DNA of 64,000 nucleotides from contig QPMI01000517.1 in assembly GCA_004431415.1 (NCBI GenBank), positions 124,001 to 188,000 of the forward strand. Direction: 5' to 3'. Both the position numbers and the translations under genes were made by a program. Shown in pieces: positions 1 to 30,704 of the stretch (position 1 is the stretch's first letter; the number at the start of each line of letters is the position of its first letter). The notes beneath the pieces are model-generated. The model was not told where the DNA came from, did not search any database, and worked only from the letters and a program-made list of their open reading frames with translations. Source of the DNA: Cyanophora paradoxa CCMP329 (taxonomy: Eukaryota; Plantae; Glaucophyta).

Positions 1-1600
1 TTGGCTATCCATGAATAAGCCCCCCCTCAATCCACACAGGAGCCGATGTAACGGGGCCTTACACCGTCGTCGTACGGTTTGGCTATCCGTCCGGTCTCCC
101 CCGCTGCGCCGATGCCACGGGGCCACACGCCGTCGTCGAGCGGCCCGGCTCTCCGAGGATAGGCAACCCGCGCGTCGATCCCCCGGGGCCGCAAGGCTCA
201 CCGGGGTAAGATGCCCCCCTGCTGTTCGCTCTCCGCCGCGCGCGCCCTCCCGCCCGCCTGCACGCCGCCCGCCTCCCCATCTCGACCCTCTCATGCCACA
301 CCTTCCTCGCAGGAAACTGGGTCTCCGGCATGATGTCTCTACCCTTCTGTTCTCTTTTCTTTTCCTCGCCCTCCTCCCGCCGGCGGCCAGCCTCGCTCCG
401 GTCCTCGGACCCCTAACTGCACCCACCACCTGGGCTCTCCCCTCCACCCCTATCCTCGAGACCCGCGAGTCTCCTCTCTCTAGCTTCACAGGGGCTCTTA
501 TAACCTCTCTCCTTCTCTCCATAGCCCTCCTCCTTTTCGATCTCCCCCACGTGCCCCCCAGCCCCGCATCATCTCGGGGCCCGCACCGTAACCCAGACTC
601 CCGCCCATACCCCGCCCCATCCCCCTCCCCCCCCGCTCCACCCGGCCCTGGCTCAACCCGCCCCGCCGACGTGTCTGGCGCCACCTCTCCAAGGCCGCTC
701 GCCGCCGCCTGCGCCGTGCTCGTCCGCGCCGGCATCTCCAGACCACCCTCCCCCTCCCCCTACCGCTACCTGGGTACCCAGATCCCCTATTCCCCTACAC
801 GTCCCGCCCTACACCTCGGTCCCCCCGCCGCCGTCACTCCCGTCGCTTTCGTCGCTTTCTGACTCCCTCCCTCCCACCTCCCCCGGCCCCCGCCTCATCC
901 CCCGCCCCTCCGGATCCCACGACCTCTCTCTCTGCCCCTACAACCCAAACGCTTGCCCTACGCCCCTCCTCCTCCGCTCGCCAACGGACACGCACTGCCC
1001 GCCCGCCCCCCCCCCTCCCTATGCGCCCCTCTTTCTCCACGGCCCGCGCAAGCCGCAATTTCGCCGCCGCCGTTCTTCTTCGCTCTCACTGGTTGCCCGC
1101 CCTGCCACCTCCCCCCACGCTTCCGACCCGACCACCTCGCCCGCCCTTTCGGTCCGGCACTCGACTAACACGCACTATCCTCTTATCCCGCTGTCCCGAA
1201 CCCAGCGGCCATGGCCATGTACACTCCCCCGAACCCACCCCCACCCCTACTCCCCCCATGCCCCCAGCTCCTCGCACCCCCACCCTCCCCCGCCCTCTCC
1301 CCCGCCCTCCCCCCTCTCATCAGACGCCCCCTACAGCGCGGCCGCCCCATTATAACCTCCCCAACAACCTCACCTACCCATGCCTTCTCCTCCTCTTTCT
1401 TCTCAACCAAATCTTCTTTCCCTCCCGGTCTCCCCCTCGACCCCGCGCCCCCTACCCCACCTCTCCTTCCCCTGCCCCCCACCCTCCCCTCCCAGCCCCC
1501 CTCTCAGTCTGCCCCAACACGCCCCCAGTCCACGGGCCCGCCCTATCCTGGATGTCTCGAGCTCTCACCCTGACATCAACCCAGCCCCCCCCCCCCCTAG

Positions 1601-4600
1601 CCGCATCCCGCCCCCCCTGGTCGCACCTCCCGCCTCCCTTCTCCAACTTCCCTCCGCCTTTCTGCTCCCTCCCTGCCTATTTCTCCTCCTCCTATTGCAC
1701 CGCCTGACAACCCCCCTCTTCAACCCCACCCCTGCCCCACATGCTCTCCGGGATTTCCTTGCACAAGGACGCCACCGGTTCGGTTCGCCCCTCTCCTCAG
1801 CACGCACACCTCCCCTCCATACCTCCCGTTAGCAGCCCTTCTTCTCCATCTTTACCTCGCGTCCCCGGCCCTCCCCACTATTCTTCAAATCGGCGCCTCC
1901 GCCCGCTTCCTGCTTGGCTCCCTCCCACTCCTCCCTCTCTCTCTCCTCGGGGACCCCCCGCCCTACTCCCCCCCCGCGCCTCCCCCCACTCCACCAGACT
2001 CCCCCCACCAAACCCCCCTTGCGGCGGGGTGCCTCCTCTGCACCCTCATTCTCGCACGCCGCCGCTTCCCCTTCTCGCCCTCTAACCACGCCTTACTTAG
2101 TCTTCTCACCCTCCCCCTCCACCCCCCGCCCCCACCGCTCCCCCGATACTCCCCCATCCTCCCTCCCTACGCTAGCCTCCTCGCCGCTCTCGCCTGGGCT
2201 CAGCTTACTGCAGCCACCCTCAATTTCCCCCCTTTAGCATTCGAACTCCTCCTGACCACTCCGGCCTCCCTAGCGGCAGAATGGCACGTCCTTGTCTGCA
2301 CAACCTTCCACTTCCTAGTAGACCTCCGGCGAGCCCTGTACGAGGCAGCAGACCCGGGCGGAACTCCCCTCTCTCTCTCCCTCATCGCCACCGCCCCACT
2401 CATCCTTCTCCACTTCTCCCGGCCCGAGCCCATCGAATTTGTCAGTCTTATCACTGCGGCATCCCTCGCGGGTTTTGCGCTCCAATCTCTCCTCGATAGT
2501 ATCTCTCCCCGCGGCCCCCTCCTCCAAGCTCCGTACCCGAACGCCGTCCCCGTACCAGTGATTCGCTCCCTCCTCCTCCTTTCCCTATTTACACACACGG
2601 AGACGCGCACGGCCACACCAAGCCCTCCTCCCGCCCGGCCCAGCGCCTCCGCCCTGGCTGTACTCGCGTTCACGCTCGTGCTCGCCGTCTTGTTGTGGAC
2701 CGTCTTAACAAAAATTTCCAGTCACTGTACCTCCCCCCTACCCTGGGGGGTACGCACACGCGGCAATCCCCGATTCTCACCTGCACAACTCACAACCCGG
2801 CCCCTGCATCTCGCCGCCATGGGCCGGAAAAGTGGCAAATCCCCAGCTGACCCCAATATTCCCGAGTCTGATCTGGGAACAGCCCCACCCGACCCAACGG
2901 ACTCCCTAGCGACCTCGCTCTCGACGGCCGCGACCCTCCCTTCCGGATCCCAAGGGCAGTCCGAGCCACCCCTTCCGTCAGCAACTCCCCTCCCAGCCGC
3001 CGAGGGCATCCCGGAGGAAACCACCCACCCTGCGATCTCGGCGGCCCGAACGCAATCAGAACAGCGTTTCGGTCCGGGCCCCACCTCTCTCATCCTCCCC
3101 ATTATCGCTTTCATCACTCACTGGACCACAGCGGCCGTCCAGCAGACAAAGAACAGTTTGTACGGAGCAGTGGCGATCCGGCGCCAGATCTTCTCCTCCC
3201 CCTCTGCTCTGCTGAAAGCCTCCCCGGAGAACACAGCCTCCGGCTGCCGACGCCCCCTCCCAGACCAAGCCCGTAACACCCTCGTCATCGTGGCTCCCTA
3301 CACCTCATTCATGCCGGCCATGCCGCCCGGCTTCCTGGCCCTCGCAGAAGGCAAACTGACAGCCGCAAACCAAGACTACGTCAAAGCAAACCGTGGCTAC
3401 GGCAACAATTTCCTTCGCGACCACCCGACTCACCCAGCACACGGCAAGCTCAACCTGAACGGCGCAATCCCCACTGTCTTCAGCGGCACTGAGCGGGATA
3501 GCCGCCGTACCTACGCGACTCAGGCAGTGGGATTCCTGGTCAGCAACAGCCCCGCCCTGACTCTTTTCCACCAGCTCCCAACCCCACTCCCCAGGTTGAT
3601 CCCATCGGCCACTGGACTCCTGAATTCCAGAACAAAGTACTCGACTGGGCGGCCCAAGACCTCGCCCTCCCGGACCGCAAAGGTGCTCGCGGCGCACTCC
3701 TCGACGACTACCGCGCCCTCCTGGAACCCCAAGCTGACCGCGAACTCTACGAATACGTCGTACGCACTTCTCCTAGCTGCACACCGCACTTGCGCTCACT
3801 CCCAGCCTATGCAGATCCGCCACGCGGCCCCCGGCGGGCCCCTACGCGCAGAAGACGGATCCGCGGTCACTACCACGCTCGCCGAAGTTCTGACGGACTT
3901 CCAACGGTACCTTTTCAACGTTCTCCAGGCAGGCGGCACAGCACCGGACGTCGCCGGCCGCGCCGCAATCAACGCCATGCAAGCCCTCACGTACAACAGC
4001 AAACTCGACGGTCATGAGGCCTTCGTCCTCGTGGATAGCAGCACGCACCGCACCCTGTGCGCGGCAGACCCCGCCAACCAGCTCCCTCCGGCCGAGGCGG
4101 TCATGGCCAGCGCCTTCTTCCCCTCCCTCCTCGGATGCGCTCTCTGCCTCCCGCGCGGCCTCCACTCCGACGATCACCTCCGCAGCGCCTCCTTCTCCCT
4201 GTTTATCCCGGGCTCCACCGCTCCCTCGTTTCAGGCGGTATCTTACATCACGCGCGCCCTCTATCTCCAGGGGATCACGGTCCTGGGCACGATCCACTCC
4301 TCGCTCCCCGCCGGTAACCCAACCCTCGTGGTCGTATGCGCGCTCGACTCCTACGCTTCGCTCCCCCTCCCGTCGCGCCGCCTCTCCTTCTCCGATGACG
4401 GCCTCGCACTCCAAGCTTTCTTCCGCACTTTCAACATCGTCCGCCTCTTTCCTTTTTCTCACCCCATTCCTCGGCGTAACGCTACCCTCAGGGAACTGAA
4501 GCTGCCCCGGTGCTGGTGGAAACCTATGAAATACTACTCACGCCTCCGGCCTCTGATCTCTCACTTGACCTCACCTACGGCGATTTCAACCTCGACCTCA

Positions 4601-7600
4601 CGGTCGCGCTCTCCAAGTGCTGCACTAAGTGCCGCACCGGGCCACACCCTACCGACTGGTTCCACGGGCCCATCACATGCCGGGTGCTCCCCACTCCTGC
4701 TGCCCCCACCCCCACCCGCGGCCCCTCACCTCCTCGTAGGCCAAACGCCAGCGCACTTCCGATGTAATCATGCTGGCGGCTCCCCCGACCCTTGCCTCCC
4801 CGCCTGTATCGTCGCCTTTGATCTCGCGCCGCAAGGCCCGCTTCTAGCACTCATGTACTGGCTGCTGCACGTCCGTAAAAGGTTACAGTCTCACTTTACA
4901 CCTCAGCCTGCCCGGCCCCCGCACCTGGCACATCCACTCCCACCCCTCACCCTCACTCCATTTGCACTTTCTGCACATGGCTCTGGGCGGAATAGCACAC
5001 CCATGCCCCAATTTCAAATTCATAATCGACAGACCCCACAGGCCCCGCGGCCCCTCCAGACAGCACTCGCCGCCTCCGCACCGAGCACATACTCTCACTC
5101 CAACAGCCCTTGCCAGCCGCCGTCCAGACCCCACTCGCCGCCTACCTCCCCCCCCCCGCACACATCGGCCCAGTGTGATCTGCAGGACACCGTCAGCCCC
5201 CCCAACGCCCGCCGCCGCGCTAGGGTCGGCGGACCTGAGCCCGGGGCGGGATCGCCGACGCACCCCTACGCGCCGCCCGCCCTGCCCCCGCCTACGCCGG
5301 CTCTGCACGCCCTACAAGACAGCCTCAGCCCCCCCGACGCCCGCCGCCGCACTACGACCGATGCCCGTCGCTATGCTCAGGCCAACGGACCTGATCCTGA
5401 AGCGCGAACGCCGCCGAGCCCCCACGCGCCGCCCGCCTCGCCCTCGCCCGCGACAGCTCCGCGCGACCTGCAAGAACCTATCAGCCCCCCCGCTGCCCGA
5501 CGAAATACTCAGGCTGCCGAACCTGGGCCTACAACGGCGCCACCACCCGACCCTCGCGCGCCGCCCGGTCGCCCCGCCGCCCGACACCATGCTAGGCCTG
5601 ACGGACCAGAGACTGAGACGCCGTCTCCGATAGCCTCTCCCACGCTGTCCGCCTCGCCTCCGCGGGCGACGGCTGCGCACGGCCGGCAGGAAATGCCGGG
5701 GCCCCGCGCGCCGCCCGTCTTCCTCCCGCCTGCACCGACTATCCCGCGGGACCCTACTACACCGGCTCTCTTGCCCGCACTCGCGCTGGAGCTCCGCGGC
5801 CTGCCGGCGGCTGCCCTACAAGATTCGATCCACTGCCCGGGGCTTAGCGCTTGGGCCGAGGAGCCCGCGCCAACTCCACAGGACTCATCCCAGGTACATC
5901 CCGCCGAATCCGGGCGCGATATGCAGCTGCTGCTGGACCCCAGTGTGCCGTCCGCCTCTCTCCTGCCCGCAACGCTATGCGACTCGCGCGCTGGCCCGGA
6001 ACGGCCGACGGCGCCGGACACCAGAATGACTACCATCGCATTCTGCACAGCGCTCATCCTACGACACCCGGCTTCCCCCCCCCCCATAGGGGTACATACC
6101 ACCTCAGCTCCGCCCAGCCCAACCATGAATCCGCTTGCCGCGGTTCACAACCTGATGGACCTCTCTCGGCAAACACTACGTAAGTGGCTCGACAGCACCC
6201 CCACTCACCGATCCCACTCGCCTGAAGCACCCGCAGAAGATATCCACCGAGAGCTCACACACGTCAACATCCCCGACGACCAGGCGGATGAAGACGAGCG
6301 GGACGAGAACGCTCAAGCCCTTTCCGCCCGTCTTCGCCAGCTGCTCACCGGACTAGGCGGCTCTCCGACAGTAGAAACTTACTCTGATACTCTCCCCAGC
6401 ATCATCGGGTGCAATCCTTGCTACAGCGTCGCTGGTGAAACAGTAGCGGAAGCCTCAGCCACCACCCAGCTCGCCAACCCGGTAGTAGTCGTTCTCAACT
6501 GTGAGCCAGCCGGCGATTACTCCAGCTCAGCTAGCACCCTCAGCTACGCATCGGCATCCCCGCACTCGCCATCCCCGGACCACATCCAGCGTACCACCCT
6601 CGAAGCGGCGGAAGACTGGCGAGCTCACGTAGGATCTGAGCTAGCACGACGCGGCATCTTCCTGGTGCCAGCCACACCCACTTTCTTCCACCTAGCGTGT
6701 ACTGGCCCTCTCGAATGCGGCCTGCAGTCCGAACGCTCCCTCCCCGCTTTCAGGGTCCGTCCCACTGCCAACCTCTTCACCCCCCCTATACTCATACCTC
6801 GCCAGCTCGATCCTCTCCTTCCTCCCGGCCCCGTAGCGCACGGGCGCCGGACCGCAACCGCCCAAATCCTGGCGGGACAACTGCGCAACCTCCTCCACGG
6901 CTACTGCGACCCGGACCGCACTTACGGCGTCCTCGCGGCCCACACGTCCGCACTCCTTCGGGGAGGCGACCCCGTTCTCATCCGCCTCGCTGCCTTAGGC
7001 CAAGTCCCTCTCACGGACCTTCTCTTGGGCGCCCTTATCCTTCTCATAGAAACCAATTCCCCCGATGCCTTCGAGACCTCCTCCCTCGACGCCTTTATCG
7101 AGGCCATCCTCTCCATCCGCCAATTTGGTATAACCTTCGACCCCGACCTCAACATCTCCGAACTCACCCTTTTCCTCCCCCCGAAAACCGCTACCTCCCT
7201 TCTTCTCTGCCTCCCTGACTTCCCCTTCATCCCCTCCACCCTCTGGGCAGCCATCACCCACTCCCGGACACCCTCCCGCCGCTCCTTACTGCTCCTCCAT
7301 CACCCGTTCCGCACTCACCACGACCGGGGCGACTTTGTTCTTCTTCTGGCCCGCTCTTCCGATCTCTTCCCCGACCCCCCCACCCACTCTAAACGAGAGC
7401 CCTTTCACGATAGGAAATTCCGCACCGAGAATTTTTCCGCCAAACTGGACGCTCTCCACAACCGCCTCTCCCCCTGCCCCCTCTTTGGACTTCTCGCCGA
7501 CCCCGAGTCCCTACCATACATTCTCCTTCTTTTCCCCAAGGCCGCGTACTCCATGCTCCCACCTCAAACTTCCCTCCCACTCACCACCTTCCCCACTCCC

Positions 7601-10600
7601 TTCCACTCCTGCGAATCCCACCTCCCCTCTCCGCACCCGTCCCATATCACGGCCCGCCCCCGCCTCCTGTCCAACCCTAAAGCAAAGGACGACTACGATG
7701 ACTTTCCGGGCACCCGCCTCTGGGAACTCTTCGGTAGCGAAGGCGACCAATACCTCCCGCTATCCCCCGGCCTCCTCGCCGCCATCATCTGCCCCCACTG
7801 CCTCGCCTCCGACTTCTTCTATCGGGATACCTCCTGGATCCACCCCGCTCACCGGTGCCCGGTACGCCGACATCACTCTCCCACTCGGTGCCGCCCCACG
7901 CTTACCCCCCCCGCAGGCGGCGTGACCCTCCTCCCCCCTCCTCCCTCCTCCCCCCCTCCCCCCCCTACCATCCCCTTCGACACCCCCGCCTGCTCCCCTC
8001 CCCGCGCCGACGTTTGCGCCGCGTTTATGAATACGACAAGTGGCCTCCCCTGCCTCACATACACACCCGGGCTACCCCCTCGAGCTCGAAGCCGCGATAG
8101 GGCTATCGCACCTGGGCCCGTACCGCGAACGTCATTGGGCCCCCGCACGGCGCCCGATTTACCCTTGCCCGCGTCAGCCCCGCTCGTACCGGCAGACCCC
8201 CGCGCGCCGCCCGCCCTGCCCCCGCCCGCGCCGGCCCCTCGCGACCTGCCGACAGACCTTAGCCTCCCCGACGCCCGCCGCCGCGCTCGGTCCAACGGAC
8301 CTGAGCCTGAAACGAGACCGCAGCCGAACCCCCGCGCGCCGCCCGCCTCTCCCCCGCCTCAGCCGTACCAGCGCGACGGACCAACGCCTGCAACGTTCCC
8401 ACCGTCGTGCGCGTCGCCCGCCTCATCCTCGCCCAAGCCGACCCCGCGCGACCGGCCGGAGGACCTTAGCCTCCCCGACGCCCACCGCCGCGCTCGGGCT
8501 GACAGACCTGAGCCTGCAGCAAGGTTGCCGCCGAGCTATCACGCGCTGCCCGCCTCGCTCCCACCCACGCCGACTTTGCGGGACCTGCCGGCAGACCTCA
8601 GCCCCCCCGGCGCCCGCCGCCGCGCTAGGGCTGACGGACCTGAGCCTAAGGCGAGACCCCTGCCGGCCTCCCACGCGTCGCCCGCCTCGCCCCCGCCCCA
8701 GCCGGACCCGCGCGACCTGCAGGGAGCTCTCAGCCTCCACGACGCCCGACGTCGGGCCGACGGACCAGCGCCCGAGGCGATACGCCTCCGAACGCCGCCC
8801 ACCTCACCCTCGCCCAAGCCGACCCCGCGCGACCGGCCGGCAGACCTTAACCCCCCCAACACCCGCCGCCACGCTCGGGCCGACGGACCTGAACCTGAAG
8901 CGAGACCGCCGCCGACCTCCCACGCTCCGCCCGCCTCGCCCCCGCCCCAGCCGGCCCAGCGCGACCGGCAGGAAGACCTCAGCCTCCCCGACGCCCGAAG
9001 CTGCGCCTGGGCCGACAGCTCCGAGCCTGCAACGAGACCACCGCCGAGCTCCCACGCTCAGCCTGCCTCGCCCCCGCCCACGCCGGCCCCGTGCGCCCTG
9101 CCGGACGCCCTCAGCCTCCCCGCGGCCCAACGCCGCGCTCGGGCTGACAGACCTGAGCCTGCAGCCAGCTCGCCTCCGAGCTCTCACGCACAGTCCGCCT
9201 CGCCCCCGTCCACTCTGACTTCGCGGCCCCCCCGCGACCTGCACTACACTGTCCGCCCCTCCGATGCCCGGCTCTGCGCCCATGCTGACGGACCTGGATT
9301 AGCCGCGAAACCGCCGACGGGCCCCAGCACGCCGCCCGTCCCGCCTCCGCTCCGGGCGCCGCACGATCTACAAGACGCTGTCAGCCTCTCCGCTGCCCGA
9401 CTCCGCGCTCGCGCTGACGGACCTGGATCTGCAGTGCAGCCGCCGCCGGGCCCCGGCGCGCCGCCCGCCCTGCCTCCGCTCGAGCCGGCGCCACCGGGCC
9501 CCTGCGCGCCTCCGGTTCCGCCCCCGCCCTCGCCGGCGCGGTGCGCCCTGCAGGACGCTGTCGGCTTCCCCGCTGCCCGGCGCCGCGCCCGCGCTGACGG
9601 ACCCGGACCCGACGTGCAGCCACCGCCGAGCCCCAGCGCGCCTCGCGCATCGCCTCCGCCCGCGCCGCGCGACCTGCAGAACACTGTCGGCCGCCCCGCT
9701 GCCCGGCGCCGCGTCCGCACTGACGGACCTGGACCTGAAGAGAAGCCGCCACCGAACCCCAGCGCGAACCGCGCCTCGCCTCCGCCCGCGCCGTGTGACC
9801 TGCAGGATGCTGTCGGCCGCCCCGCTGCCCGGCGCCGCGCCCACACTGACGGACCTGGACCTGAAGAGAAGCCGGCGACGGGCTCCAGCGCGAGCCAAGC
9901 CTCGCCCCCGCCCGCGCCGCGCGACCTGCAGGATGCTGTCGGCCGCCCTGCTCCCCGGCGCCGCGCCCGGGCCGAAGGACCTGAACCTGAAGAGAATCCG
10001 CCGACGGACCCCAGCGCGCCGCCTGTCTCGCCCCCGCCCGTCCCGTGCGACCTGCAGGACGCTGTCGGCCGCCCCACTGCCCGGCGCCGCGCCCGCACTG
10101 ATGGACCTGGACCCGACGAGAAACCGCCGCCGAGCCCCAACGCACCGCCTGGGTCGCCCCCGCCCGCGCCGCGCGACCTTCAGGACGCTGCCGGCCGCCC
10201 CGCTGCCCCGCGCCGCGCCCGCGCTGACGGACCTGGATTTGAAGAGAAGCTGCCGCAGAGCCCCAGCGCGCCTCGCCCCTCGCCTCCGCCCGCGCCGCGC
10301 GACCTGCAGGACGCCGCCGGCCGCCCAGCTGCCCGGCACAGCGCCCGCGCTGACGGACCTGGACCTAAAGTGAAGCCGCCGCCGGGCCCCAGCACGCCGC
10401 CCGTCTCGCCTCCGCCCGCGCCGGCGCCGCGCGACCTGCAGGACGCTGTCGGCTTCCCTGCTGCCCGGCGCCGCGCCCGCGCTGACGGACCTGGACCTAA
10501 AGTGAAGCCGCCGCCGGGCCCCAGCGCGCCTCGCGCATCGCCTCCGCCCGCGCCGCGCGACCTGCAGAACACTGTCGGCCGCCCCGCTGCCCGGCGCCGC

Positions 10601-13600
10601 GTCCGCACTGACGGACCTGGACCTGAAGAGAAGCCGCCACCGAACCCCAGCGCGAACCGCGCCTCGCCTCCGCCCGCGCCGTGTGACCTGCAGGATGCTG
10701 TCGGCCGCCCCGCTGCCCGGCGCCGCGCCCACACTGACGGACCTGGACCTGAAGAGAAGCCGGCGACGGGCTCCAGCGCGAGCCAAGCCTCGCCCCCGCC
10801 CGCGCCGCGCGACCTGCAGGATGCTGTCGGCCGCCCTGCTCCCCGGCGCCGCGCCCGGACTGACGGACCTGGACCTGAAGAGAACCCGCTGACGGGCCCC
10901 AGCGCGCCACCTGTCTCGTCTCCGCCCACCCCGCGCGACCTGCAGGGCGCTGTCGGCCGCCCCGCTGCCCGACGCCGCGCCCGGGCCGAAGGACCTGAAC
11001 CTGAAGAGAATCCGCCGACGGACCCCAGCGCGCCGCCTGTCTCGCCCCCGCCCGTCCCGTGCGACCTGCAGGACGCTGTCGGCCGCCCCACTGCCCGGCG
11101 CCGCGCCCGCACTGATGGACCTGGACCCGACGAGAAACCGCCGCCGAGCCCCAACGCACCGCCTGGGTCGCCCCCGCCCGCGCCGCGCGACCTTCAGGAC
11201 GCTGCCGGCCGCCCCGCTGCCCCGCGCCGCGCCCGCGCTGACGGACCTGGATTTGAAGAGAAGCTGCCGCAGAGCCCCAGCGCGCCTCGCCCCTCGCCTC
11301 CGCCCGCGCCGCGCGACCTGCAGGACGCCGCCGGCCGCCCAGCTGCCCGGCACAGCGCCCGCGCTGACGGACCTGGACCTAAAGTGAAGCCGCCGCCGGG
11401 CCCCAGCACGCCGCCCGTCTCGCCTCCGCCCGCGCCGGCGCCGCGCGACCTGCAGGACGCTGTCGGCTTCCCTGCTGCCCGGCGCCGCGCCCGCGCTGAC
11501 GGACCTGGACCTAAAGTGAAGCCGCCGCCGGGCCCCAGCGAGCCGCCCGTCTCGCCTCCGCCCGCGCCGGCGCTGCGCGACCTGCGGGATGCCGTCGGCC
11601 TCCCTGCTGCCCGGCGTCATGCCCGTGCTGACGGACCTGCGGCGCCGAGCGCCCTGCAGGACGCGGTCGACCTCCTTAAGGAACAGTCCGCCTCGCCTAA
11701 CTTGGCGCCCCTAACCACGCACCGGCCCCATCCTGCGAAGCCCCCGCCCTCAATTAATCGCGGATTCACCAACTCGCGGGCACTAGCTAAGCATCGGACC
11801 TACTCCCACCAACGCTCTGAAAATGCGCACGAAAGCACGTCTACCCCCGCCTGCCCGTACCCCCCCCTCGGCACCGCCGAACCCGCGATGGCGACGCCGT
11901 CGAACCCCATTCCTTCTCTCGGACAGCTCCCTCCGCAAGCGCTGGCGCTCCGAGCATGGATGCTTCCCGAACTTGGTCTGTACGCCGCCGCAACCGGTTC
12001 ATGCAAACCCGCACCTCACTATCTCTCCCACTCTATCGCAGCGCGCATCACGGGCCGTCTGTATCCTCTCCTTCCTAGTCGCCCCTGGAGCCCGACTACA
12101 AACACGCTCTCGGTCCCCCACTGGTCATCCTTCGAGGAATGGACGGCCTGCTACTTCACCATTTTCCATTCCTTCCACGCCAGCCCGGGCCCGATCAGCG
12201 CGGCTACGTGGGACTCCATCGCCGACTGCACCCGCTGTCGGTCGCTCCAGGCTCCCGCGACGAGCGCCACTTCACAGCTTCTCAACCCGGACATCTGCAT
12301 AGTCTCTGCACGCCCGTATCAAGCGACCCGCGCGCTCCGTGCCGGGGCCGAGGCGACGGCACAACGACTCCTCGAACTCGCATGTGGCAGCGGAGTGGAT
12401 TCCTTCGACAACCTTGACATTGACTTCGTACGCCCCCACAGCCACCATGGCCCGTGTTTCGGCCGCCGCCGCTCCCCCCGCGAGGCTGCGGAGACTAGCT
12501 CCTTCGTCCTCGAAGTACGCACTGCTCAGGCCTTCTTCCGCGCTGCTCTCCTACCACGCCCGCCTTTGCTCATGTGCTCTCTCCTCCGGCAGAACGCCAC
12601 GGCACTCACTGACGAACTGGAGGCGGGCGCCCGCCTGACACGCTGGGCCCGGGCGGCGAGCTCTCACCTCTTCAGCGACGACCTCTTCTGGGGCGACTTC
12701 GCCGACCCCGCCGATGTTCCTGAACCCGACATCGCCCTCCCTCTCTCCCCCCTTTCGGCCCTTCTCTCCAGCCCCGCTCACCCCTACGCCATAATCCGCC
12801 TTTATACCGTTGGAGAACCAGCCCCCATCGACGCGCTTGCCGGCTTGCTCCGGATTTTAGCCGACCGTCGTGCTCCCCTCGACCAGCCGCCCAGCCCTGG
12901 CTACCACACCATACTAGAAGAAGCTAGGACGGCGGCTTTCCTAGAACTACGACAATGGTCTGGCCGCTACCTCCCTGAACTGGGAGTTTCCGAAATCGCG
13001 GCCCTTGTCCCTCTTGAGACCGCCCGCTCCCTCTTCCATGCTTCTCTTCCTCTCTCATACCAGGCTACCAAGGCGGCGATCCTCGCGAGCTCCGCGGGTC
13101 AGCCGGCCCTCCTCCTCCACCACCCCCTCTCGACCCACATTGAACGCCACGACCTTATCTTCCTGGTCCTCCGCCTCTCTGACCTAGACCTCCCCGCCCC
13201 CGACCCCGAAACTCTTCGCCGCACTCTTCAAGCCCTCCTCGTCGGCCCCCCGGGCACCCTCGCTGCTCTCCGTCCCCTCGGCCTCCTCTGTACCTCGTCC
13301 CTGGCCATCCTCGCCGTCCCATCCATTCTCTACGACCAGCTCCCTCCTCCCGCGCCCTACGCAGACCACCCCCCGACCCCGATCACTGCTCTCCTCCGCC
13401 CCATCCCCCGCGCCGCCCCTTACTATCAGACTCCCAGCCCGTCTCTCGCCGCCTGGGAACTCTTCCGCAGCGACCGCCCCACCTATACCCCCCTCTCTCC
13501 CGCTGCTATCCAGCAGACAACGTGCCAACGCTGCGTTTCGACACCTGCTTTCCTCGCCAGCGCGGCCTGGCTCCACTCCACACGGCAGTGCCCGGTACGC

Positions 13601-16600
13601 CCCCCAGACCCCTCCCCCTCCTCCCGTGCTTACCCCGCCCCCAGCTACACCCCTGAAGACCCCCCTCCCCCCCCTTCCTCCCCTCCCCCGCCCCGGAGTT
13701 ACCCCCCCGAGCGTGTCCCCCCCTCACGCTCCTCCCTACCCGCTATACGCTGGGAACTGTACATAATGTTTCATACCCTTTTCGTCTCTTCCGTGACCAA
13801 TCGCACCCGCACCACCACCTCCCGGCCGTCGTTGCATCCTCCTCGCCCCCCTGCCCCCCCAGCGCCCCCTAGCGCCCAAACTCCCACGCACATCGAGCCC
13901 CACCAGACCAGCAGCATCGTAATGCAAAATTCCAAATTGCGTGGATACAGCCGGCCGTGCCCCATCTCCTCCTGGCACAACGGGGACCGGACCCCTCCTT
14001 TAGTGAGAGTCCAGCAGCTCCACCAATACTCGAGCCGCGGCCCGCAGAGCCGCCCCTCGGGTGGGAAAGACCATCTGAGCAACGGAAGCGCTAGCGTTGA
14101 GGCGGCCCACGGCACACAGCCGCCAAGGACACCGCTCAGATCCACCCCCGCGCAGAACGGGCACTATCCCCTCGAAGCCTGCCACCTCCACAGCCTCCAC
14201 GGTCACCTCGGTCGCCACCCGCAACAACGCCTGCACATCGCCCAGATCCAACAACAACCTGCCGCGCGTAGCCGCGAAGCAGCGCAGCTCCACCTCCACG
14301 AAATCACTGCTCAATTGCACGATGTAGTCGCTCTGCAGATACTCCTTAGCCCGATGCGCCACGTCGCCCACAACGGACATGTACTCGAGGCGACGCAGCA
14401 CTTCAGCGTCCGGCTGCAGCCCGCCCTGCGCACGCGAACTCAGCCACGAACGCCGCTCTCACAGATTACTGGCACGCACATGCCGGCACCTCCCAGGAAA
14501 CGCTCTCCAGAGAACTGCCCCGATGTCCCGCCTCACGATCACAGGCCCAACAAAGCGCACTTCCTCGTCCGACCCGCTCCCACTACCACGCTCCTCTACA
14601 ACCCCGGCAGCCGGGACGGCTCTCACACCGGGGACTGCCATTCCTGGGGGAACCGGTACCCCTGCTCCCCTTACCCCCCCTGCTCCCTCCGTAGACTCAG
14701 CGAATCCGCATCCACACACCCAGCCCCGTGCAACCAGATGGGGGACTTTATCGATATCTATTACGAGCTCCAGCTCATTCTCCCGTCGGAGCATGCCGCC
14801 ATGACCCGCCTACAGAAGCACGCGACAGACCTGGCGAAGGACCCGGAGGCTGCTAGACATCTCACCAGCCTTTCCGTACAGCAGCCACGCCACCGCTCGT
14901 CCGCCACCACTACTCGCTTTCTTGGCCCGGTCGACAGCGCCCCCCGTCACGCGTGGCACGCTGGGCTCCGCCACTTCGGCCTCCAGGAATTTGCACCGGC
15001 TCACGCCCAATACATAGCCGCAGCCATGGCAGCCGTGATAGAAACAGCGGAACGCCCGCTCACTACACTAGCCCCGTCTCCCGAGCCAGGACTACAGCTA
15101 AACAGCCTGATCCTGTCGGCCCTCAGCGATCTCTTGGATCTCGCAGCGCTCACAGGCGACGTCTTCGCCTACGATGTCCCCTGGAAGCACCTCACAGCCC
15201 GTCCTTTCGCCTCACAGGACGCGATCCAAACCTTCAAGAACGCGGCGTTCCGCCAAGGCTACATCAAGGTCGCAATCACCAAAGCCTTCATCGACCATGA
15301 GACCACTCTCCACGCGCTTCACCCGACCGGCACGATCACGTCCAGCACGTACATCCATGCGGATCACCCGGGCACCACCCGCACCGGCCGGTCGGAACGC
15401 GCCTCAATCACATTGGCCCTCGCCTTCCTCGATGCGGCACTATCCCGTGCCCACCATCTTGAGAAATTCCTCCGCCGCGCCTTTTCCCTCCTTAACTGCC
15501 GTCAATTTCCCTACGCGGTCAGCTGCACCCCCTCCCCCGGCCCCTCACACCCGGTACTAATCCCCGCCTCAGACCGCTACCCTGGCTCCCTGGCTCTTTG
15601 GTCCGACCCAATCGACACCCCTCACCCCCACTCCCAGCACGAGCTGACCCCGGCCCGCACAGGCTTCCCGCGCACCATCAACACCTTTTCCGGAGCACTG
15701 CGAGACCTCCGCCGCCACTTCGTCCCGGGCCAGGGCACCACTGCAGAATACCGCCAGGCTATCTTTGCCTCGGATCTCGCCCCTGCGACCCACACTCTCA
15801 TTTTGGAAACGTGGCTGACTCTAGTCCTCCGCTATGGTATTAGCGCTGCAATCCAGAGCCGACCCCTCCCCGCCATCTTCCTCGCATCCATCCCTACCCA
15901 ACTTGGGGACCTCCACCGCGGGTTTGCCCCACCCGATTTCCCCAACACCACGTACTCCCTCTCACCCTCACCCACAGATGGACCCGTGTGTCCCCCCGCA
16001 CGAAGGAATGGATCCGTCTTCTCTCAGGCGAAAGTCCCGGGGGCCCGTCCCGTTCCCCTCGCATCTCCCTCTAACCGACCCAGACCCCTTCACCCTCCCC
16101 TCCCCCCCCTCGACTGTCCCACACTCTGCTCTTCCAATCCCCTGTCATGTTCGGAAACAATATGGCAATCCCGAGCAGACACTGCCCTTTCGCTACTCCT
16201 CCGCGCCGTACCCGCCGGAATGAGCCCTGCACCCTACCCGCCCCCGACACCCCGCACGATAGAGCCCCCACACGCCGGAAAGCCGCCGTCGCGCCTCCGC
16301 AAGCCGCCCGCCCCGCTTCCGATCGTGTCAGCCCCAGACGCCCTGCGGACGGCGGCCGGTCTCCCCGCCGCCCGCCACCGCACTAGGGCCGAAGCACCAG
16401 GGCCCCAATGGACGTCGGCGTCGGACCCCCGAACACCACTCGCCCCGCCCCCGCCCGCGCCAGCCCCGCGCGACCTGCAGGACACCCTCAACCTCCCCGA
16501 CGTGCAAAGCCGAGCGCGGGCCGACGGACCTTTGCCTGAAGCGAAACCGCCGTCGGGCCCCCGACCGCCAACCGCCCCACCCCCGCCCACGCCAGCCCTG

Positions 16601-19600
16601 CGCGACCCGCAGGACGCCCTCAGCCTCCCTGACGCCCAAAGCCGCGCGAGGGCCGCTGGACCGGCGCCTGAGGCGAGACCGTCGTCGGGCGCTCGTGCGC
16701 CGCCCGCCCCGTCCCCGCCCGCACCAGCCCCGCGTGACGTGCGGGACGTCCCCAACCTCCCCGACGCCCAGAGCCGCGCGAGGGCCGCTGGACCGGCGCC
16801 TGCGGCGAGACCATCGTCAGGCCCTCGCGCTTCGCCCACCTCGCCCCCGCCCGAGCCAGCCCCGCGCGACCTGCAAGACACCCTCAGCCTCCCCGACGCC
16901 CAAAGCCGCGCGAGGGCCGACGGACCGGCACCCGAGGCGAGACCGCCGTCGGGCCCCCGAATGCTGCCCGCCCTGCCCCCGCCCGCGCCAGCCCCGCGCG
17001 ACCTGCAAGCCACCCCCAGCCTCCCCGACGCCCAAAGTCGCGAGAGGACCGACGGACCCGCGTCTGCGGCGCGACCGCCGCTGGGCCCTCGAGCGCCGCC
17101 CGCCCCACCCCCGCCCGCGCCAGCCCTGCGCGACCCACAGGACGCCCTCAGCCTCCCCGACGCGCAAAGCCGAGCGCGGGCCGACGGACCGGCACCTGAA
17201 GCGAGACCGCCGTCGGGCCCTCGAGTTCTGCCCGCCCCGCCCCCGCCCGCGCCAGTCCTGCGCGACCCGCAGGACGCCCCCAGCCTCCCTGACGCCCAAA
17301 GCCGCGCGAGGGCCGATGGCCCTGCGCCTGAGGCGAGACTGTCGTCGGGCGCCCGTGCTGACGGACCTGGACCTGAAGTGAAGCCGCCGCCGGGCCCCCG
17401 CGCGCCGCCCGTCTCGCCCCCGCTCGCGCCGGCGCCGCGCGACCTACAGACCGCTGTCGGCCTCCCCGCGGCCCGGCGCCACACTCGTGCCGACGGACCA
17501 GGACCTGCGGTGAAGCCGCAGCCGAGCCCCAGCGCGTCGCCCGTCTCGCCTTCGCCCGCGCCGGCGCAGCGCGACCTGCAGGACGCGGTCGGCTCCCCCG
17601 CTGCCCCGCCCCGCGCCCGTGCTGACGGACCTGGACCTGCAGTGAAACCACCGCCGGGCCCCCGCGCGCCGCCCGCCTCGCCCCCGCTCGCGCCGGCGCC
17701 GCGCGACCTGCAGACCGCTGTCGGCCTCCCCGCTGCCCGGCGTTGCGCTCGTGCCAACGGACCTGGACCTGAGGTGACGCCGCCGCCGAGCCCCAGCGCG
17801 TCACCCATCTCGCCTCCGCCCACGCCGGCGCCGCGCGACCTGCAGGACGCTGTCGGCTTTCCTGCTGCCCGGCGCCGCGCCCGCGCTGACGGACCTGGAC
17901 CTAAAGTGAAGCCGCCGCCGGGCCCCAGCGCGCCGCCCGTCTCGCCTCCGCCCGCGCCGGCGCCGCGCGACCTGCAGGACGCGGTCGGCCTCCCCGCCGC
18001 CCGGCGCCGCGCCCGCGCTGACGGACCTGGACCTGAAGAGAAGCCGCCACCGGGACTCAGAGCGCCGCCCGCCTCGCCTCCGCCCACGCCGCGCGACCTG
18101 CAGGACGCTGTTGGCCCGGCGGCTCGGTGCCGCGCCCGAGACGACTGTCCGATCCCTAGAGCAAACCTAGGGTTGCAGAAGTGTCCCGGAGGCCCGTCTG
18201 CAACGCCTCGCCCGTCGAACGCGTCGCCAGGCACGCCGCAAGAAGTCACTCCCCGTCGTGCTACTGTTGTCGCTGCCGCGCCACGCCGCGCTGCCCGCCT
18301 CGGCATTCAGCAGGCCGCGCAAGTACTTTCGCAGCTCAGTCGCCGTGTCTGCATCTGGAGCACCTTATGGACCACTGTCGCTAGACCGCGCTACGGCATG
18401 CTCCAGAACTTGATCGCTGGACCGGAGCACGGAAGCCCCATCAGAGCCGTCGCATACCGCAGTGGCCGGTGGAGCATCCCTCCCCAGTCGGAACGTCCCA
18501 GGGCCCCGGACGAAACTGCGCCTACCGGTACCCCCACCGCGTGCCGTCAAAAAACTCCAACGCGAACAGGCTTTTTTATTCATTCGATTTGTGAGTCGGA
18601 CAATGATTCGAAGCGGCCCAGTGCCTCCGCACTCCGCGATTGGGGCTGGAATAACTGCACTATAGCTAGTACCACTAACCCCGCGTACGGCCACGTGCCA
18701 GGGCCTAGCTGTAACACCGATACTACCATTGCAGGTTACGCAGCTAGCACTGGCGCCCACGCTAGTGCTGGCCCCACCAACGCCGGCGCCTCAAGCTCAG
18801 ACGCTGCGCTGCATGACGCCGAGAGCTGTCGTACGAACCACGCGTACGGATCAGGACGTGTACTAGCTATGTGTACGGCTGCGTACCTCGCAGTCAGCCC
18901 CCGCGCTAGTGCCCACGTGCACGCTAGCGCTGGCCCCGCCGGCGCAGGCGACACGGACTCTGCGCCGCTTGACGTCGACGCCGGTCTCGAACCCCTGGGC
19001 CGGCGCCGGACCGCGCGCCGCGCCCCACAAGCCCAACGGTCCTTCAGCCGCCCGGCCCCTCTCCCCACACGCCTCCTCCTCTGTGTTCTCCTCGCCGCCC
19101 TTGTCCCCGTCGCCCTTGCGGACATCGAGCCCAGCACAGCAACGGCCGCCGCAGTCGCTACCGCCGCCGCCGCCCTCTCCTCTCCGACACTAGTCACGGC
19201 GGCCTCGTCCCTTCTAACATTATACCCTCCCTCTCTGTACACCGCTGACCGAATTGACGCCCGCCACCACCGAGATGCGCTCCAGATCCCTGTCCTAGCA
19301 CACCCCCCGGACGCGGCAAATGCGAAGCTGAACCTCCGCGCCCTCACGTGGAATATTCGCCGCTTGGAGGGGAAGGCGAGCGGCAACAATATTGCAACTA
19401 AATTTATCAGCGCAATTGACTATGGCCGCCGTGACTGGGACTGCCACTTCGTTGCTCTTCAAGAGGTCGACATGGTCCCTACCGACCGCCCCCCCTCGAA
19501 GCCCTTTCCGCCCAATATCCGCGATCACCTGATTCAGACAGCAGTCCGCCGCCATAAATCTAGCTACCTTGTCTACTCTCCTCCATCCGCGGCCCGTCCT

Positions 19601-22600
19601 GGCACCGCCGGCTCCGCGCTGTGGATCTCAGCAAGCTATGCAGCGCACCGCCAGGCGGATTACGCGTTTGACGGCCGAGTAGCCGGCGCTCGCTTTGACT
19701 TCCCGCGCACGCGCGAGCGCCTCATTGTCCTCTCACTCTACGTGCCGGACTGCGGGCACGACAATTTGCAAAAAGAGCTCCACGACCTCACCGAATACCT
19801 GACCGCGAAGGTCGCACCCGACATCCACGAACCTGACTGGCAGACGCATCTCCTGGTACTCGGCGATATGAATAGCACATACTCTCCGTGCAACGACCGG
19901 ATCACTGGGGGCAACCGGCGCACTGAAACTACCCCCCCGAACTCCTACGCAGAAATATGGACCCTTTTCCGCGAGACCTGGGGTCTTTGTGATACCGGAA
20001 CCCCGGGCGATTTCACACACGTTTCCCGCCACGCCGACTTTCTTGACGACCAGGGCCACCGCCCCCTCCTGGACGCCGCCCGCATCGACTACGCCCTTGC
20101 CTCCCCCACTCTCGCGGCCCGATCACTAGGGACTCGCACACTCTATGTCCCTGGCCGACCGTCCCCTTTACTCACAGCCGACCATCTCCCCGTACTTGCG
20201 ACCTTCAAAACCGAAGGCGTGCTCTCTGCCCCCCCTACGGAGCCCCGCCAGCCCCGACCCCAACCTCTCCCTCCTCTCTTCAACTATGCCGCCCAACCTG
20301 CACCCATCCGGCTTGCTTTCAAGCTCGCTGTCGAAACTTTTCTCAATAAACACGGCCAGCGGTATATCCAGCTCCTTCTCACTCCCGAGAACAGCCCCGA
20401 CTACGCCCAACGCGCCACGAAATCCCACCGCTCCCTCCTCTGTGCTATCGCCCAAAGTATCAAGTCCGTCGCCCACTCTCAAGAATTCTCTACTGCTAAA
20501 GTCCTCCAACACCGCGTCGCTGCTCAGGGAGATATGGCTAAGTTCAACCATCTATCTGCACTGGACGCTGACGACGAACAACTCGTTGGCCGCGTTGGAC
20601 AGGCCTTACACGACTGGGCGCACCAAGGCTCCACAGACCACCCGCCTGACGAAACTATCCGGGCTGTCCTCCGGGACCTTCCCAAAGACGTGACGGACAT
20701 CCGAAAAGCTGCGGGCTCGGACACCACACTGGCTTTCTGCCCCTCCCTCCTCGCTTTCCCCGACCCTCCTAATTACCCTGAATTCGAGAATGGTACCATT
20801 ACAGGCTCTGAAATCGCCGAGTACCATACTCAACTAAGTACATGGCACTTACAGGCGCGGGCCGCCCTGGACAATCATCGCCGTGCATATACCGAAGCCG
20901 ACATTGCTCGCAATATTGACACCCGCCGCCACCTCCTGTCCCACTGTCGAAGTATGGGTCGGGCTATTCAACTCCTCCTCTCCCGTTTCCGATCCGCCCC
21001 CCGCCTATACCTTACCCGCACGGCAGCGGGACTACCCGAAGTGCTCACCGATCCCAATGAAATTAAACGCGCACATCTGGATCACTTCAAAAATTTCTGG
21101 CGACTCCGCAAGGCTGCCCCAAACCTGGATGCCATAGCTACGAAATTCGCGGACATTGAAAACGGCGCCTGGTTGGGCAGATTTTGGAAACGCCAGTACC
21201 GACCCCTTTCCCACTTCACCCCCGCCGTCTGGGACGGACTAATGGCCATGCCAGAAGACCCCGAACTCGATCGCCTCATCTCGTCCCTGTCCAATGGCGC
21301 AGGCGGTCCCTCCGGCCTCACGAACGGAATGATTAAAATGCTCTGGTCCCCCCTCCGCCTCTCCAAGACGGAACGCCAGGCCTTAGCCGCCTCACACTCT
21401 ACAGACGAGATCACCAGCTTCGAGTCCGCGGCTCACTGGACCACCTCGCGCGACGCCATCCGAGCTCTAGTTCAATCCACTCTTCTCGGCCACGTGCCCG
21501 ACCACGCACTTCGCGGTCAAGTCTACGCTATCCCGAAACGTGATAATTCAGCAGATCTTGCCGATCTCCGCCCCATCACCCTTCAAGAAGTCACCTGGAA
21601 GCTGGTCACGGGCCTCCTGACCCACCGCATGGAAGACCGTATTGATACACATAACATTCTACGCGGCCGCAACTATGGCTTTTGTCGCCGCGAATCTACC
21701 GACCCTGTTCTCTACGCCCTCCGATCCTCCCTCGAGGACGCGCACCAGTTCAAAAAGCCAATCTTCGGCGGCCTGGGGGATATTGCCAGCGCCTACGACA
21801 GTGTCTCCTGGCATAGCCAAGAGCTCAGCCTTAATCGTATCCAACTCCACCTCCATCCTGAAGGGAAACGATACATAGCCCTCCACAAAAAAGCAGCTCA
21901 GCACCGCACGGCGTGCATCCTTACCCCCCACGGCCGCACGGAATATTTTCAAGTCCCCTGTGGCCTCCCCCAAGGAGGCATCGAAGCCCCTCTCCACTGG
22001 CGCATTTTCTTCGACGCCGCTCTCACCGCCATCGAAGATCGAGCGACTCAGTCCAATTTCGGATACCAACTCGGGCCGCACCGATCTGACCCTACCCGCC
22101 CCCGTTCCCCCCGCCCACCATGCCCTGGCGAACCCCTCTACTTCCCCTCCGGTCCCTGCCCCACAGTCTCTGTGCTCGCATACGCCGATGACACCACCAT
22201 GCTTGCCAGCTCGGCTCAGGGTCTCCAACATATGCTTGACTGGCTGTCCGAATTTCTCCATATCCATGGCATGAACTTGAACGCCAAAAAGACGGAAATT
22301 TTCCACTGGAAACCCCCCCGATCCGAAGCGCCAGTCAAGAGCAAATACTATGTCGGCGTCGGCGATTCCAGAGCTGAGGTTGGCCACATCCTCTCCCCCA
22401 CAACACCATTCCGCGTCCTCGGCGTCCAGTTTACTGCGAACCTGTCTTGGACCCACCAAGTCCGTCTACTCAAGTCCCAGCTCCAGTCCGCAATCTCCGT
22501 TCTAGCCACAAAGAAGATTACCGTTCACGAATTCCAAGTGATACTACACCGGGTTCTCTTCCCTAAACTGGCATACCCTCTCCGCATCATGACCTTAACG

Positions 22601-28700: not shown

Positions 28701-30704
28701 CCCCCCCACCCCTGCCCCAGTCCCCGAGGACCCTACTTCCCCACCCCCACCCTCCCCGCCCCCTGCCACGTGCACCCCCCCGGGCTCCCCCCCGCCCTCT
28801 TCCCCACCGAGGGCCGCAGACCCCAGACAGCCCGACCCTACAACCCACCCCCCCGAAGACTTCATTCACATATTTACGTGCCCCGCCGCTCGCCTCCTCC
28901 TCCAAGCTTTCCAGGATGCACTCGTGACCTTCCTCCGCACCCGGGTTCTCCGCCACTCGCCCAAACCCTTAGGACACGACGACACTATTTTTCAACTCTT
29001 TCCCTTCCTCCGCCTCGTCTCCCCTGACCCCGCCTCTCCCCTCCAATCCGCCCTCCTCTCCCCCACCGAAAATCCGGCCCTTTTCCGCCCCCCAGGTCTT
29101 ACCGATACCCTATGGACAAAGCTTAGCCCGGCCTTGGCTGACATACTCCCCTTCCCCGCCCCTGCCCTCCTGCGCCTCGGTACCCCGGCAGGATTGCCCG
29201 CCCTCTGCGCAGCCCTGGGCATCAACAAGACCACCACAATGTCAATCCAAAAAGATTTAGCGCTACTCCTCGACCAACACCTCCGTGCGATCTGGAGGGA
29301 CCGCTGCGCCCGCAACCACGCCTGGGAGCTCCGACAAGGCATCACTGACAGAACCAAACGTCGATACCGCAAACATGCCGACACCAAACCCTCCCGCTCG
29401 CCGCTAGTACAGCCGCCTAGTCCCCCCCTCCCCCCCCCCCCCCCCGCCCCCTCCCTCCATGATACCATCTCCATCACTGACTTCTGCTGCGAATTGGACT
29501 CGGAAGGCCAACCCTGGGTTCTCCTGGAAAATATCCGCCAAGCAATAGCACGACTCCCTGCCGCCCCCTCACCCCAGGCCGCCCCCTCCCCTCAGGCCCC
29601 TCCCTCCCCCCAACCGCCCGATGCAGGACCCACCGCCGGACATCTGACTTCTCTTGCACCTGTGGCACCCAATTTGCCTCCGCAGCTGCCCTCCAGGCCC
29701 ACTCCGACGCCAGACGGGGAAAGTGCCCCGCTCGCCCAGAGACCACCTCATACTCTCGACCTGCCTCCCAACCTGCTGCACCCCCAACGCAGCCTTCCCA
29801 CAAGAACCCCGACAATGGCACCCTGCCCGCTCTGCCCGCGGGCCCTACGTCCGCTACTCAACCTTCCAAGCGCCCCGCCCCAACGCTCCCCCTGGCCCCT
29901 CCCTCGAAACGAACTCGCCCGTCGCCTGCCTCACGCAAACGGACAACCGCTACTCCCCCCGCCCCGGCACCCAAACGCCCGCGCCTCATGACCCCTCCCC
30001 TTCCCGCCTCTGCACCCGCCCCACCCGTACCTACGGCAAAAAGAAAGGCAGCCGGTCGCAAGACCCCCAAGCGCGGGACCAAAAAAGCGCGAACGGTGTC
30101 GATACCTGCTGGACAACCCACAATCACGTCCCTCTTCGCACCTGGAGTGTACAAACCACTAACGACGCTTCAAGTAGCCGACTCTCCCCCCCCCTCCTCG
30201 CTTCAGCCGGCCCCCCCGACCGGGACCCCGCACGGTGCCGCCCCGCTGCCCCCTACGGTTCCTCCCCCAGCCCCAACCGACTCACAAGTGCCGAACCCCT
30301 CGTTGACTCCGGCCACCCCTATGGCTTCGGCCCTCCCCTCGGCTTCGGCCCCCCCCTCGGCTTCGGCCACCCCATCGGCTTCGGCCCCCCCCCCGGCTTC
30401 GGCCACCCCATCGGCCTCGGCCACCCCTCTGGCTTCGGCCACCCCCCCTACTCAGACCGACCCCTCCCGACCCCTCGCGACCCGCCTCGCCTCCGCACTC
30501 CCCGCTCTCTGCGCCGCCTGTCAGTGCCCACGCTCACTCCACTCTGCCGTCCCGGCACCGCTCCCTGCCCTGCCCCGCATCCGCTGCCCACCCCCTACCG
30601 CTGCCTCCGCCCACTCCCTCTCCTTCCTCATATCTTCCTCCTACCACCTTCTTCACCTCGACAGAACGGGACACCGATTAATCGGGGTCCTGGGGCGCAG
30701 GTGA
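22609..30704 (+). CDS. Continuation of element A polyprotein (post-RT region, split RNase H, two Ulp1-like domains, CCHC finger, basic tail), broken by about 5 indels
   Basis: Frame hops near 22615, 23186, 26990, 27178 and 29700-29790, mostly in homopolymer runs. The pieces align with element B: QCQILDAVW/QCQELDRIW, RVEGDPR in both, CPFC..EDFIHIFTCP/CALC..ETLEHVLTCP, IWRDRC..WE..GIT/TWAARC..WEK..GIT. Confidence 0.8.
24219..28250 (+). CDS. Split RNase H domain of element A
   Basis: IYTDAS (D 24231), LGELAG (E 24375), ITDSQ (D 24441), WVPSH (H 24633). The final helix HNDAVDKLAK is displaced to 28219-28248. Confidence 0.75.
25880..26500 (+). CDS. Ulp1/SENP-like (C48) domain 1, catalytically degenerate
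   Basis: VDAFFRLLQNRQ..CLFLSS..YDYILLPL..PWRLAII..IRILD..PTQ..DALFVM follows the C48 motif order but lacks the catalytic His and Cys. Confidence 0.6.
27000..27720 (+). CDS. Ulp1/SENP-like (C48) cysteine protease domain 2
   Basis: IRRGDLIHLRP..LVEAFLDML, LLDARLVLVPI, GHWHLLAL (His 27346), FYIHNGSL, LQPPNSTACG, LRRYREYIAL. One frameshift near 27178. Confidence 0.75.
30323..30445 (+). repeat. 18-bp minisatellite (ggcttcggccmccccmtc)
   Basis: About 7 tandem units encoding ASAPPS/ASATPS. Confidence 0.9.

Follow-up and report, generated by a model that had tools for sequence, protein, structure and literature searches.

Why should a single reading frame stay open for 21 kb, through four genes, their introns and the DNA between them, and then run into the enzymes of a long interspersed nuclear element (LINE)? 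The question is raised by a 64,000-nucleotide (nt) stretch of the Cyanophora paradoxa CCMP329 genome (GenBank assembly GCA_004431415.1, contig QPMI01000517.1, positions 124,001 to 188,000), called here the window; all coordinates below are positions in it. The plus-strand frame concerned, referred to as the main frame, contains no stop codon from 1601 to 22717 (7038 codons), and the preceding in-frame stop lies at 1598-1600. The open reading frame (ORF) listed for it spans 2558-22717 and corresponds to 6719 amino acids (aa); the first ATG of the frame is at 2819. Four plain-looking genes, designated A, B, B′ and C, are embedded in this frame, which continues into the APE-type endonuclease and reverse transcriptase (RT) of a LINE. 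Such an arrangement had been described in an earlier note made from the sequence alone, and both complementary DNA (cDNA) contigs and identity to published gene models now bear it out. Published annotation already lists the genes as plain ones; the novelty lies in their co-phased embedding in a frame that reaches the APE-RT of a LINE.

Splicing was examined by aligning contigs of three presumed RNA runs, one per study (X15, X17 and X19), and of a DNA run (X1) to positions 2400-7990. The earlier note had listed thirteen candidate introns. All thirteen are bounded by GT and AG and are of the lengths claimed for them. In the part of the window covered, which holds genes A and B, spliced joints were present in the cDNA contigs of all three studies and absent from those of the DNA run. 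For gene A, exact GT..AG joints were present in X15, X17 and X19 for intron 1 (3072-3131, 60 nt), intron 2 (3539-3594, 56 nt, offset by intron 3), intron 3 (3760-3814, 55 nt), intron 4 (4439-4491, 53 nt) and intron 5 (4684-4739, 56 nt). The same was true of intron 2 of gene B (6755-6805, 51 nt). At position 7862 all three cDNA contigs jump to the sequence after 7916, so that the terminal intron of B (7862-7916, 55 nt) is spliced as well. Independent DNA contigs are identical to the window over 2400-7924, with zero differences. Two of the studies have cDNA contigs that depart from the window at 3193, 3214, 4053, 4234, 4307, 4345, 4863 and 7358; nearly all of these differences are transitions (C>T, G>A, T>C), and the contigs of the remaining study, like those of the DNA run, agree with the window exactly. 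The differing contigs derive either from other strains or from sister copies that are expressed and identically spliced.

The introns of B′ and C were identified from published models. Removal of 11976-12041 (B′ intron 1, 66 nt), 12515-12592 (B′ intron 2, 78 nt) and 13595-13644 (B′ terminal intron, 50 nt) gives a translation that is residue-identical to tig00020952_g16489.t1, and removal of 15518-15572 (C intron 1, 55 nt), 15601-15662 (C intron 2, 62 nt) and 15922-15977 (C intron 3, 56 nt) gives one that is residue-identical to tig00020952_g16491.t1. Since both are EukProt models of tig00020952, the window is part of that contig of the 2019 assembly. The BRAKER1 models of that assembly were trained on RNA sequencing data and average 9.2 introns per gene, the mean intron length being 86 bp (PMC6704402). 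Two of the introns, 11976-12041 and 6180-6236 (B intron 1, 57 nt), go beyond the earlier list; the joint of the latter was seen in X15 only and agrees with the sister model P0009. The candidate at 16034-16083 is not used by g16491.t1, whose stop is at 16072-16074. Twelve of the thirteen listed introns are thus supported, seven by cDNA and five by gene models, and in the cassette as a whole splicing removes at least 14 short introns of the spliceosomal type.

Once spliced, the four genes have compact and well-defined products. Gene A (2819-4847) encodes about 582 aa. A single cDNA contig per run covers all five of its joints, at a depth of 115-179, and bin depths agree with the introns having no coverage (179 x 127/187, for instance, gives 121.6 against an observed value of 121.5). 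Coverage of the A mRNA begins at 2774-2832, just ahead of the first ATG of the frame, and drops past about 4870. Gene B (6125-7925) encodes 545 aa, gene B′ (11888-13656) 524 aa and gene C (15026-16074) 291 aa; an in-frame ATG at 14738 would extend the product of C to 387 aa. The stops reached after splicing are at 4845-4847 in A, 7923-7925 in B (two codons after the splice) and 13654-13656 in B′ (three codons after the splice, the terminal intron being placed as in B). The earlier note had maintained that each module finds a stop only if spliced. This is correct for 4847, 7925 and 13656; the stop it gave for the fourth module, 16223, depends on the unsupported thirteenth intron. A and B each give rise to an mRNA of their own, completely spliced and with a stop right after the last intron, and short messages encoding just the structural protein are therefore present for both genes.

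Three of the four products share a motif at their C-terminal end. In B, B′ and a sister copy of B (tig00020571_g11498) the pattern C-x2-C-x13-W-[IL]-H-x4-C-P is followed by an intron, two to three codons and a stop. In gene A exons 3, 5 and 6 lie off the main frame, and two of these off-frame exons resemble natural protein in the spliced frame only, as the earlier note had said of its alternative-frame exons. The second of the two carries C-x2-C-x10-W-F-H-x4-C, and intron 5 follows one codon past the last Cys. Knuckle and intron position are therefore common to A, B, B′ and the sister copy of B. The spacing C-x2-C-x10-13-H-x4-C is wider than that of the classical CCHC zinc knuckle, C-x2-C-x4-H-x4-C. 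We call the proteins gag/ORF1-like because of this knuckle-like motif and their position upstream of APE-RT. B and B′ are paralogs with 30% identity over their full length. The best explanation of the sequences is that A, B and B′ are paralogous gag/ORF1-like proteins and that C is unrelated to them; for A, paralogy is suggested by the motif and the intron position only, and BLASTP of its knuckle exon against B′ gave no significant match. Pfam recognized no family, even at E<=1, in the exons of A taken singly, in B′, in the sister copy of B or in C, and an exhaustive HMMER search with B′ against 1.84 billion representatives returned Cyanophora paralogs only, plus one low-complexity oomycete match. 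AlphaFold models of B′ were unusable: the predicted local distance difference test score was 34 when the sequence was given alone and 33 when five aligned sequences were given.

These genes are co-phased with the main frame. All four start codons and 5227 of the 5837 coding bases (90%) are in it. Introns whose length is a multiple of three account for the internal introns of B (57 and 51 nt) and B′ (66 and 78 nt) and for intron 1 of A; A and C contain compensating pairs of 56+55 and 55+62 nt, confirming what the earlier note had read from the sequence, and the frame is broken by the last introns only. In C the pair flanks an off-frame exon of 28 nt. When intron lengths were drawn at random, co-phasing of this kind arose in 9e-4 of trials, and in 1e-4 when start phases were randomized too. 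That the introns lack stops in the main frame, which the earlier note had emphasized, is true and is weak evidence if taken alone: composition-preserving shuffles left all 15 introns stop-free together with P=0.05, which is not significant by itself.

The signal comes from the non-repeat sequence outside main-frame coding: the 5′ leader and the off-frame exons, the spacers (1, 2a, 2b and 3), and the linker and the C tail. In these segments 33.7 main-frame stops are expected and 0 were seen (P about 2e-15). Each of the other two plus-strand frames contains 3-17 stops in the same segments, and on the minus strand no register is free of stops. Along the whole frame, in bins of 600 nt, the main frame shows 0 stops throughout, and the other two plus-strand frames have about 3 and about 5.5 per bin, near the expectation from composition. 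The strand is C-rich, with a GC skew of -0.2 to -0.5 across 1-30 kb that is common to the cassette and to ORF2; as the other plus-strand frames have stops at the expected rate, this skew is not the cause of the open main frame. Chance in C-rich, G-poor DNA, in which short C-rich introns are often stop-free, can accordingly be dismissed together with misassembly as very improbable, given the stop counts in the other frames and in the spacers and the independent DNA contigs that reproduce 2400-7924 without a difference.

Two other origins of the frame were considered and rejected. A shadow ORF opposite a GC-rich gene is not a general cause, for in each of the spacers all minus-strand registers contain stops; such an effect may be limited to about 14000-14740 at most. 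Conversion of parts of an old ORF into introns, as the sole origin, is ruled out for gene A, where the conserved knuckle is in the spliced and not in the main frame. The spliced and the unspliced readings of this DNA both carry marks of constraint, and if an RNA that retains its introns were translated, selection would favour just such an open frame with co-phased exons and internal introns.

Pfam analysis of the 6719-aa ORF gave matches at the C-terminus only, to Exo_endo_phos and RVT_1. The APE-type endonuclease (19439-20149, plus strand) was matched by PF03372 with E=6e-4, under the gathering score, and the RT (21530-22432, plus strand) by PF00078 with E=3.7e-19, over the gathering score; the best matches of the RT in PDB are R2 RT chains, and these are weak. 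The only long relative found, P0001 (metagenome contig ENA ERZ27275054 k141_121716, 297-11459), is an uninterrupted APE-RT-RNase H ORF2 of 3720 aa; PF03372 is among its precomputed Pfam families, though with a weak mark, and its host is presumably a related alga. It is 48% identical over 97% of the APE-RT region of the window (from about 19307), and demonstrates that giant ORF2s occur intact in another organism. A pattern scan of metagenomes for further APE-RT relatives gave 262 matches, of which 0 were relatives. The rest of ORF2 in the window, which is in shifted frames and includes RNase H among its domains, occupies 22618-31031 (plus strand) and ends in A12 at 31020-31031, 3′ of the last stretch aligned with P0001. 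Its pieces after the RT are still long ORFs (1428 and 848 aa). No GIY-YIG domain appeared in the Pfam results; APE is N-terminal to RT and RNase H is downstream. No LTR (long terminal repeat) turned up, no search having been aimed at LTRs.

The best explanation of this organization is that the window holds the 5′ two-thirds of a giant LINE with a cassette of four host-style genes upstream of APE-RT. The element may extend 5′ past the start of the window, since the frame is already open from 1601. Positions 1-2557 are C/T-rich and of low complexity, with a C skew of -0.53 as in the element, and Pfam found no family, even at E<=1, in two ORFs upstream in the window. Directly after the A12 tail there is a second, different LINE (31334-36807, plus strand; APE E=1e-7, RT E=1e-18), whose RT is 32% identical to that of the first and which shows no C-rich skew. 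LINEs make up 2.47% in the paper describing the 2019 C. paradoxa assembly (PMC6704402).

The DNA between the genes has features of its own. Spacer 1 (4848-6124) is proline-rich in the main frame, where about 6.3 stops are expected and 0 were seen, and yields almost no plus-strand RNA. A spliced transcript of the opposite strand (5180-6009) was found there in two cDNA runs, with CT..AC joints near 5180-5234, 5311-5389 and 5466-5520, i.e. introns of 55, 79 and 55 nt; its translation is rich in Gly and Arg and does not have the look of coding sequence. Each of these antisense introns sits within one proline-rich repeat unit, whose conserved core is DLQD...ARRRAR..GP, its reverse complement reading GTCCG...CTGAC...CAG. 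Large arrays of such units could therefore hold many antisense introns. At 6124-6127 the sequence CATG combines the ATG of B (6125) with that of a 205-aa minus-strand ORF (5509-6126), an overlap suggesting that B and the antisense unit diverge from almost the same point.

Positions 8410-11639 are filled by tandem repeats with units of 126-132 nt (42-44 codons), the periods all being multiples of three, and 16419-18116 by tandem repeats of 132 nt; both sets are proline-rich when read in the main frame. Most differences between units are at third codon positions of the main frame. The ratio of nonsynonymous to synonymous differences (pN/pS) has its plus-strand minimum in the main frame, at 0.79 for 8410-11639 and 0.53-0.61 for 16419-18116; in two arrays this minimum is tied with that of one minus-strand frame, which seems to share the third codon position. 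Spacer 3 (13657-15025), with about 8.7 main-frame stops expected and 0 seen, contains minus-strand ORFs at 14000-14401 and 14459-14794, the latter beginning with ATG; judged from gene numbering, these are probably model g16490. The linker (18117-19306) has no recognisable domain and again no main-frame stop, about 8.3 being expected. It lacks an ATG at the place where the ORF2 of P0001 begins.

Related cassettes exist elsewhere in the genome. Models of B′ occur on three contigs (g11500, g14652 and g16489) and are about 98% identical; copies of B are tig00020571_g11498, which is about 70% identical to B of the window, g14650 and the window copy itself; models of C (g14654 and g16491) were found on two contigs. 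The model numbers are spaced by two, so that the gene order B-x-B′-x-C recurs on three contigs.

Taken together, the data suggest, and do not prove, that a polyprotein is made from unspliced RNA. We give about even chances to the view that selection in the lineage of this element has favoured the translation of a read-through RNA in which the introns are retained, each module being ended by splicing. On this view an unspliced RNA would start near 2774, and its translation, beginning at the ATG at 2819, would give a polyprotein in which ORF1 is fused to ORF2; the balance of intron removal and retention would set the ratio of structural proteins to enzyme. As RT would be encoded by the unspliced RNA only, cis-preference would copy intron-bearing RNA only, and this would explain how introns have persisted in a retroelement. 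In a more far-reaching form, which we put forward only tentatively, the lineage would be an active one that uses intron retention as a switch between ORF1 and ORF2. APE-RT would then be preceded in the polyprotein by the three gag-like modules, the fourth protein and linkers rich in proline, and splicing of the short introns of host type, some of them deliberately not multiples of three, would end each module as a free protein.

A number of results weigh against translation of the read-through RNA. No contig in the three cDNA runs is unspliced at any of the seven introns examined with cDNA, it being kept in mind that such contigs may drop rare forms and that absence of an unspliced contig is not absence of unspliced RNA. 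Coverage is zero at 5018-5391 in two runs, and the B mRNA has its own 5′ exon from about 6105. The zero coverage and the antisense spliced RNA between A and B point to A and B having their own transcription units. The release of four proteins from one genomic RNA, as the earlier note had it, is thus contradicted for A and B. Further downstream, the RNA runs contain 50-60% of the sampled words of 6300-16299. By arithmetic, spliced B, B′ and C together with the antisense unit amount to about 52% of this interval, and this agreement indicates that the RNA contigs probably lack the 3.7-kb repeat array. Sister model tig00020849_g14654 (P0006) joins C to main-frame repeat units and then passes by a 1-nt shift into a stop, a sequence that hints at a frame broken in the repeat spacer of a sister copy. 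Comparison of ORF2 with P0001 reveals -1 shifts at 22618 and at about 23160, each with one base lost in a C run. The ORF2 of P0001 has its own ATG, and the 296 nt preceding it have stops in every frame; fusion to a cassette is therefore not a family-wide trait. Finally, no repeat of at least 11 nt of the sequence following the tail was found within 1-20000. As no target-site duplication was found, joint mobility of cassette and ORF2 remains a proposal; the 5′ end of the unit may lie outside the window.

Much of this could be explained if the frame were inherited and no longer used, and this is the main rival to selection for read-through. The window copy would then descend from a LINE with a long ORF, or from a recently active master needing one, and would be too young to have acquired stops; its genes would now be separate spliced units, either encoded by the element or domesticated, and the read-through would never be translated. 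The detection of spliced mRNAs only, the separate transcription units, the frameshifts of ORF2 after the RT, the frame break in the spacer of the sister model and the listing of plain genes in the published annotation all favour it. Altogether there are at least four frame changes in ORF2 after the RT relative to P0001, further ones lying at about 26600-27900 and 29400-30450. These are either real decay or long-read homopolymer or assembly errors, and the window copy may be disabled downstream of the RT. However, 0 stops or frameshifts in 21 kb upstream against at least four frameshifts in the next 8.4 kb fit constraint better than uniform youth. The conserved knuckle of A is off the main frame, which means that the spliced form is ancestral there, and yet the main frame is open. 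Likewise B and B′, although only 30% identical, both have stop-free internal introns that are multiples of three and a frame that is open past the terminal intron. On balance we regard an unused inherited frame as a serious possibility, albeit a doubtful one.

It is also conceivable that read-through is partial. Retention of terminal introns would give isoforms with proline-rich tails (e.g. B plus repeats), and this alone would keep stretches of the frame open, with APE-RT being translated from an internal start in the linker. Such isoforms are in keeping with the repeat units, which appear to be under weak purifying selection in the main frame, and with the sister model in which C runs into main-frame repeat units; in-frame Met codons are available in the linker upstream of APE. 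Against this, the linker and spacers 1 and 3 are open beyond any plausible tail, and all four ATGs share the frame of APE-RT. We therefore consider that partial read-through is unlikely to account for the frame.

Retroelements are copied via RNA, and loss of introns is therefore expected; to our knowledge, LINEs are regarded as intron-free. The LINE-linked unit described here has at least 14 efficiently spliced introns and is present in several genomic copies. For a 21-kb frame to be open across all introns, the simplest reason is translation of unspliced RNA. If this is true, it would show cis-preference protecting introns inside a retroelement and provide a natural example of dual coding over a long range, in which off-frame exons are kept open in a second frame as well. 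Should intron retention be the switch of an active lineage, no other LINE would be known that carries many spliceosomal introns and depends on them. If it is false, the locus still calls for caution in annotation, as the gene set gives plain host genes and an ORF scan one 6719-aa protein, and neither is sufficient alone.

Other retroelements, among them Penelope-like elements and Ogre LTR elements, retain spliceosomal introns when they retrotranspose. In Ogre, splicing of the intron joins gag-pro to RT and so decides whether the polymerase is translated, a logic opposite to that proposed for the Cyanophora element in that splicing fuses frames. Penelope-like elements have a GIY-YIG nuclease C-terminal to RT, and not an APE. 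We know of neither an Ogre nor a Penelope-like element with serial genes in one open frame. As for LINEs, Larson and colleagues reportedly found in 2018 that the spliceosome removes needed sequence from human L1, giving defective copies (SpIREs). The likeness is that RNA of a LINE is spliced by the host at sites inside the element; unlike L1, the Cyanophora element gives conserved, well-expressed proteins when spliced, and its introns persist in several copies.

The closest known logic is that of shGAG in the Ty1/copia elements of plants (Arabidopsis EVD and other plant copia elements), in which one long gag-pol frame is used in two ways: splicing with early termination gives a short mRNA for the structural protein only, the unspliced RNA encodes the polyprotein, and structural protein is produced in excess over catalytic protein (Oberlin et al. 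2017, PMC5580714). That system is an LTR element with one intron and one gag; both RNAs start from a common promoter, and the unspliced RNA is demonstrated. The Cyanophora element is a LINE and has at least 14 introns, three gag-like paralogs and a fourth gene, off-frame exons, and apparent internal promoters with antisense RNA; unspliced RNA was not seen among its cDNA contigs. With APE, RT and a poly(A) tail, it does not belong to the Ty1/copia lineage, and the likeness is an analogy of mechanism only. By that analogy it may be regarded as a LINE counterpart of the shGAG switch. The control of Ty1/copia by a choice between splicing and reading through would then extend to LINEs, in a serial dual-coding layout that would be without precedent.

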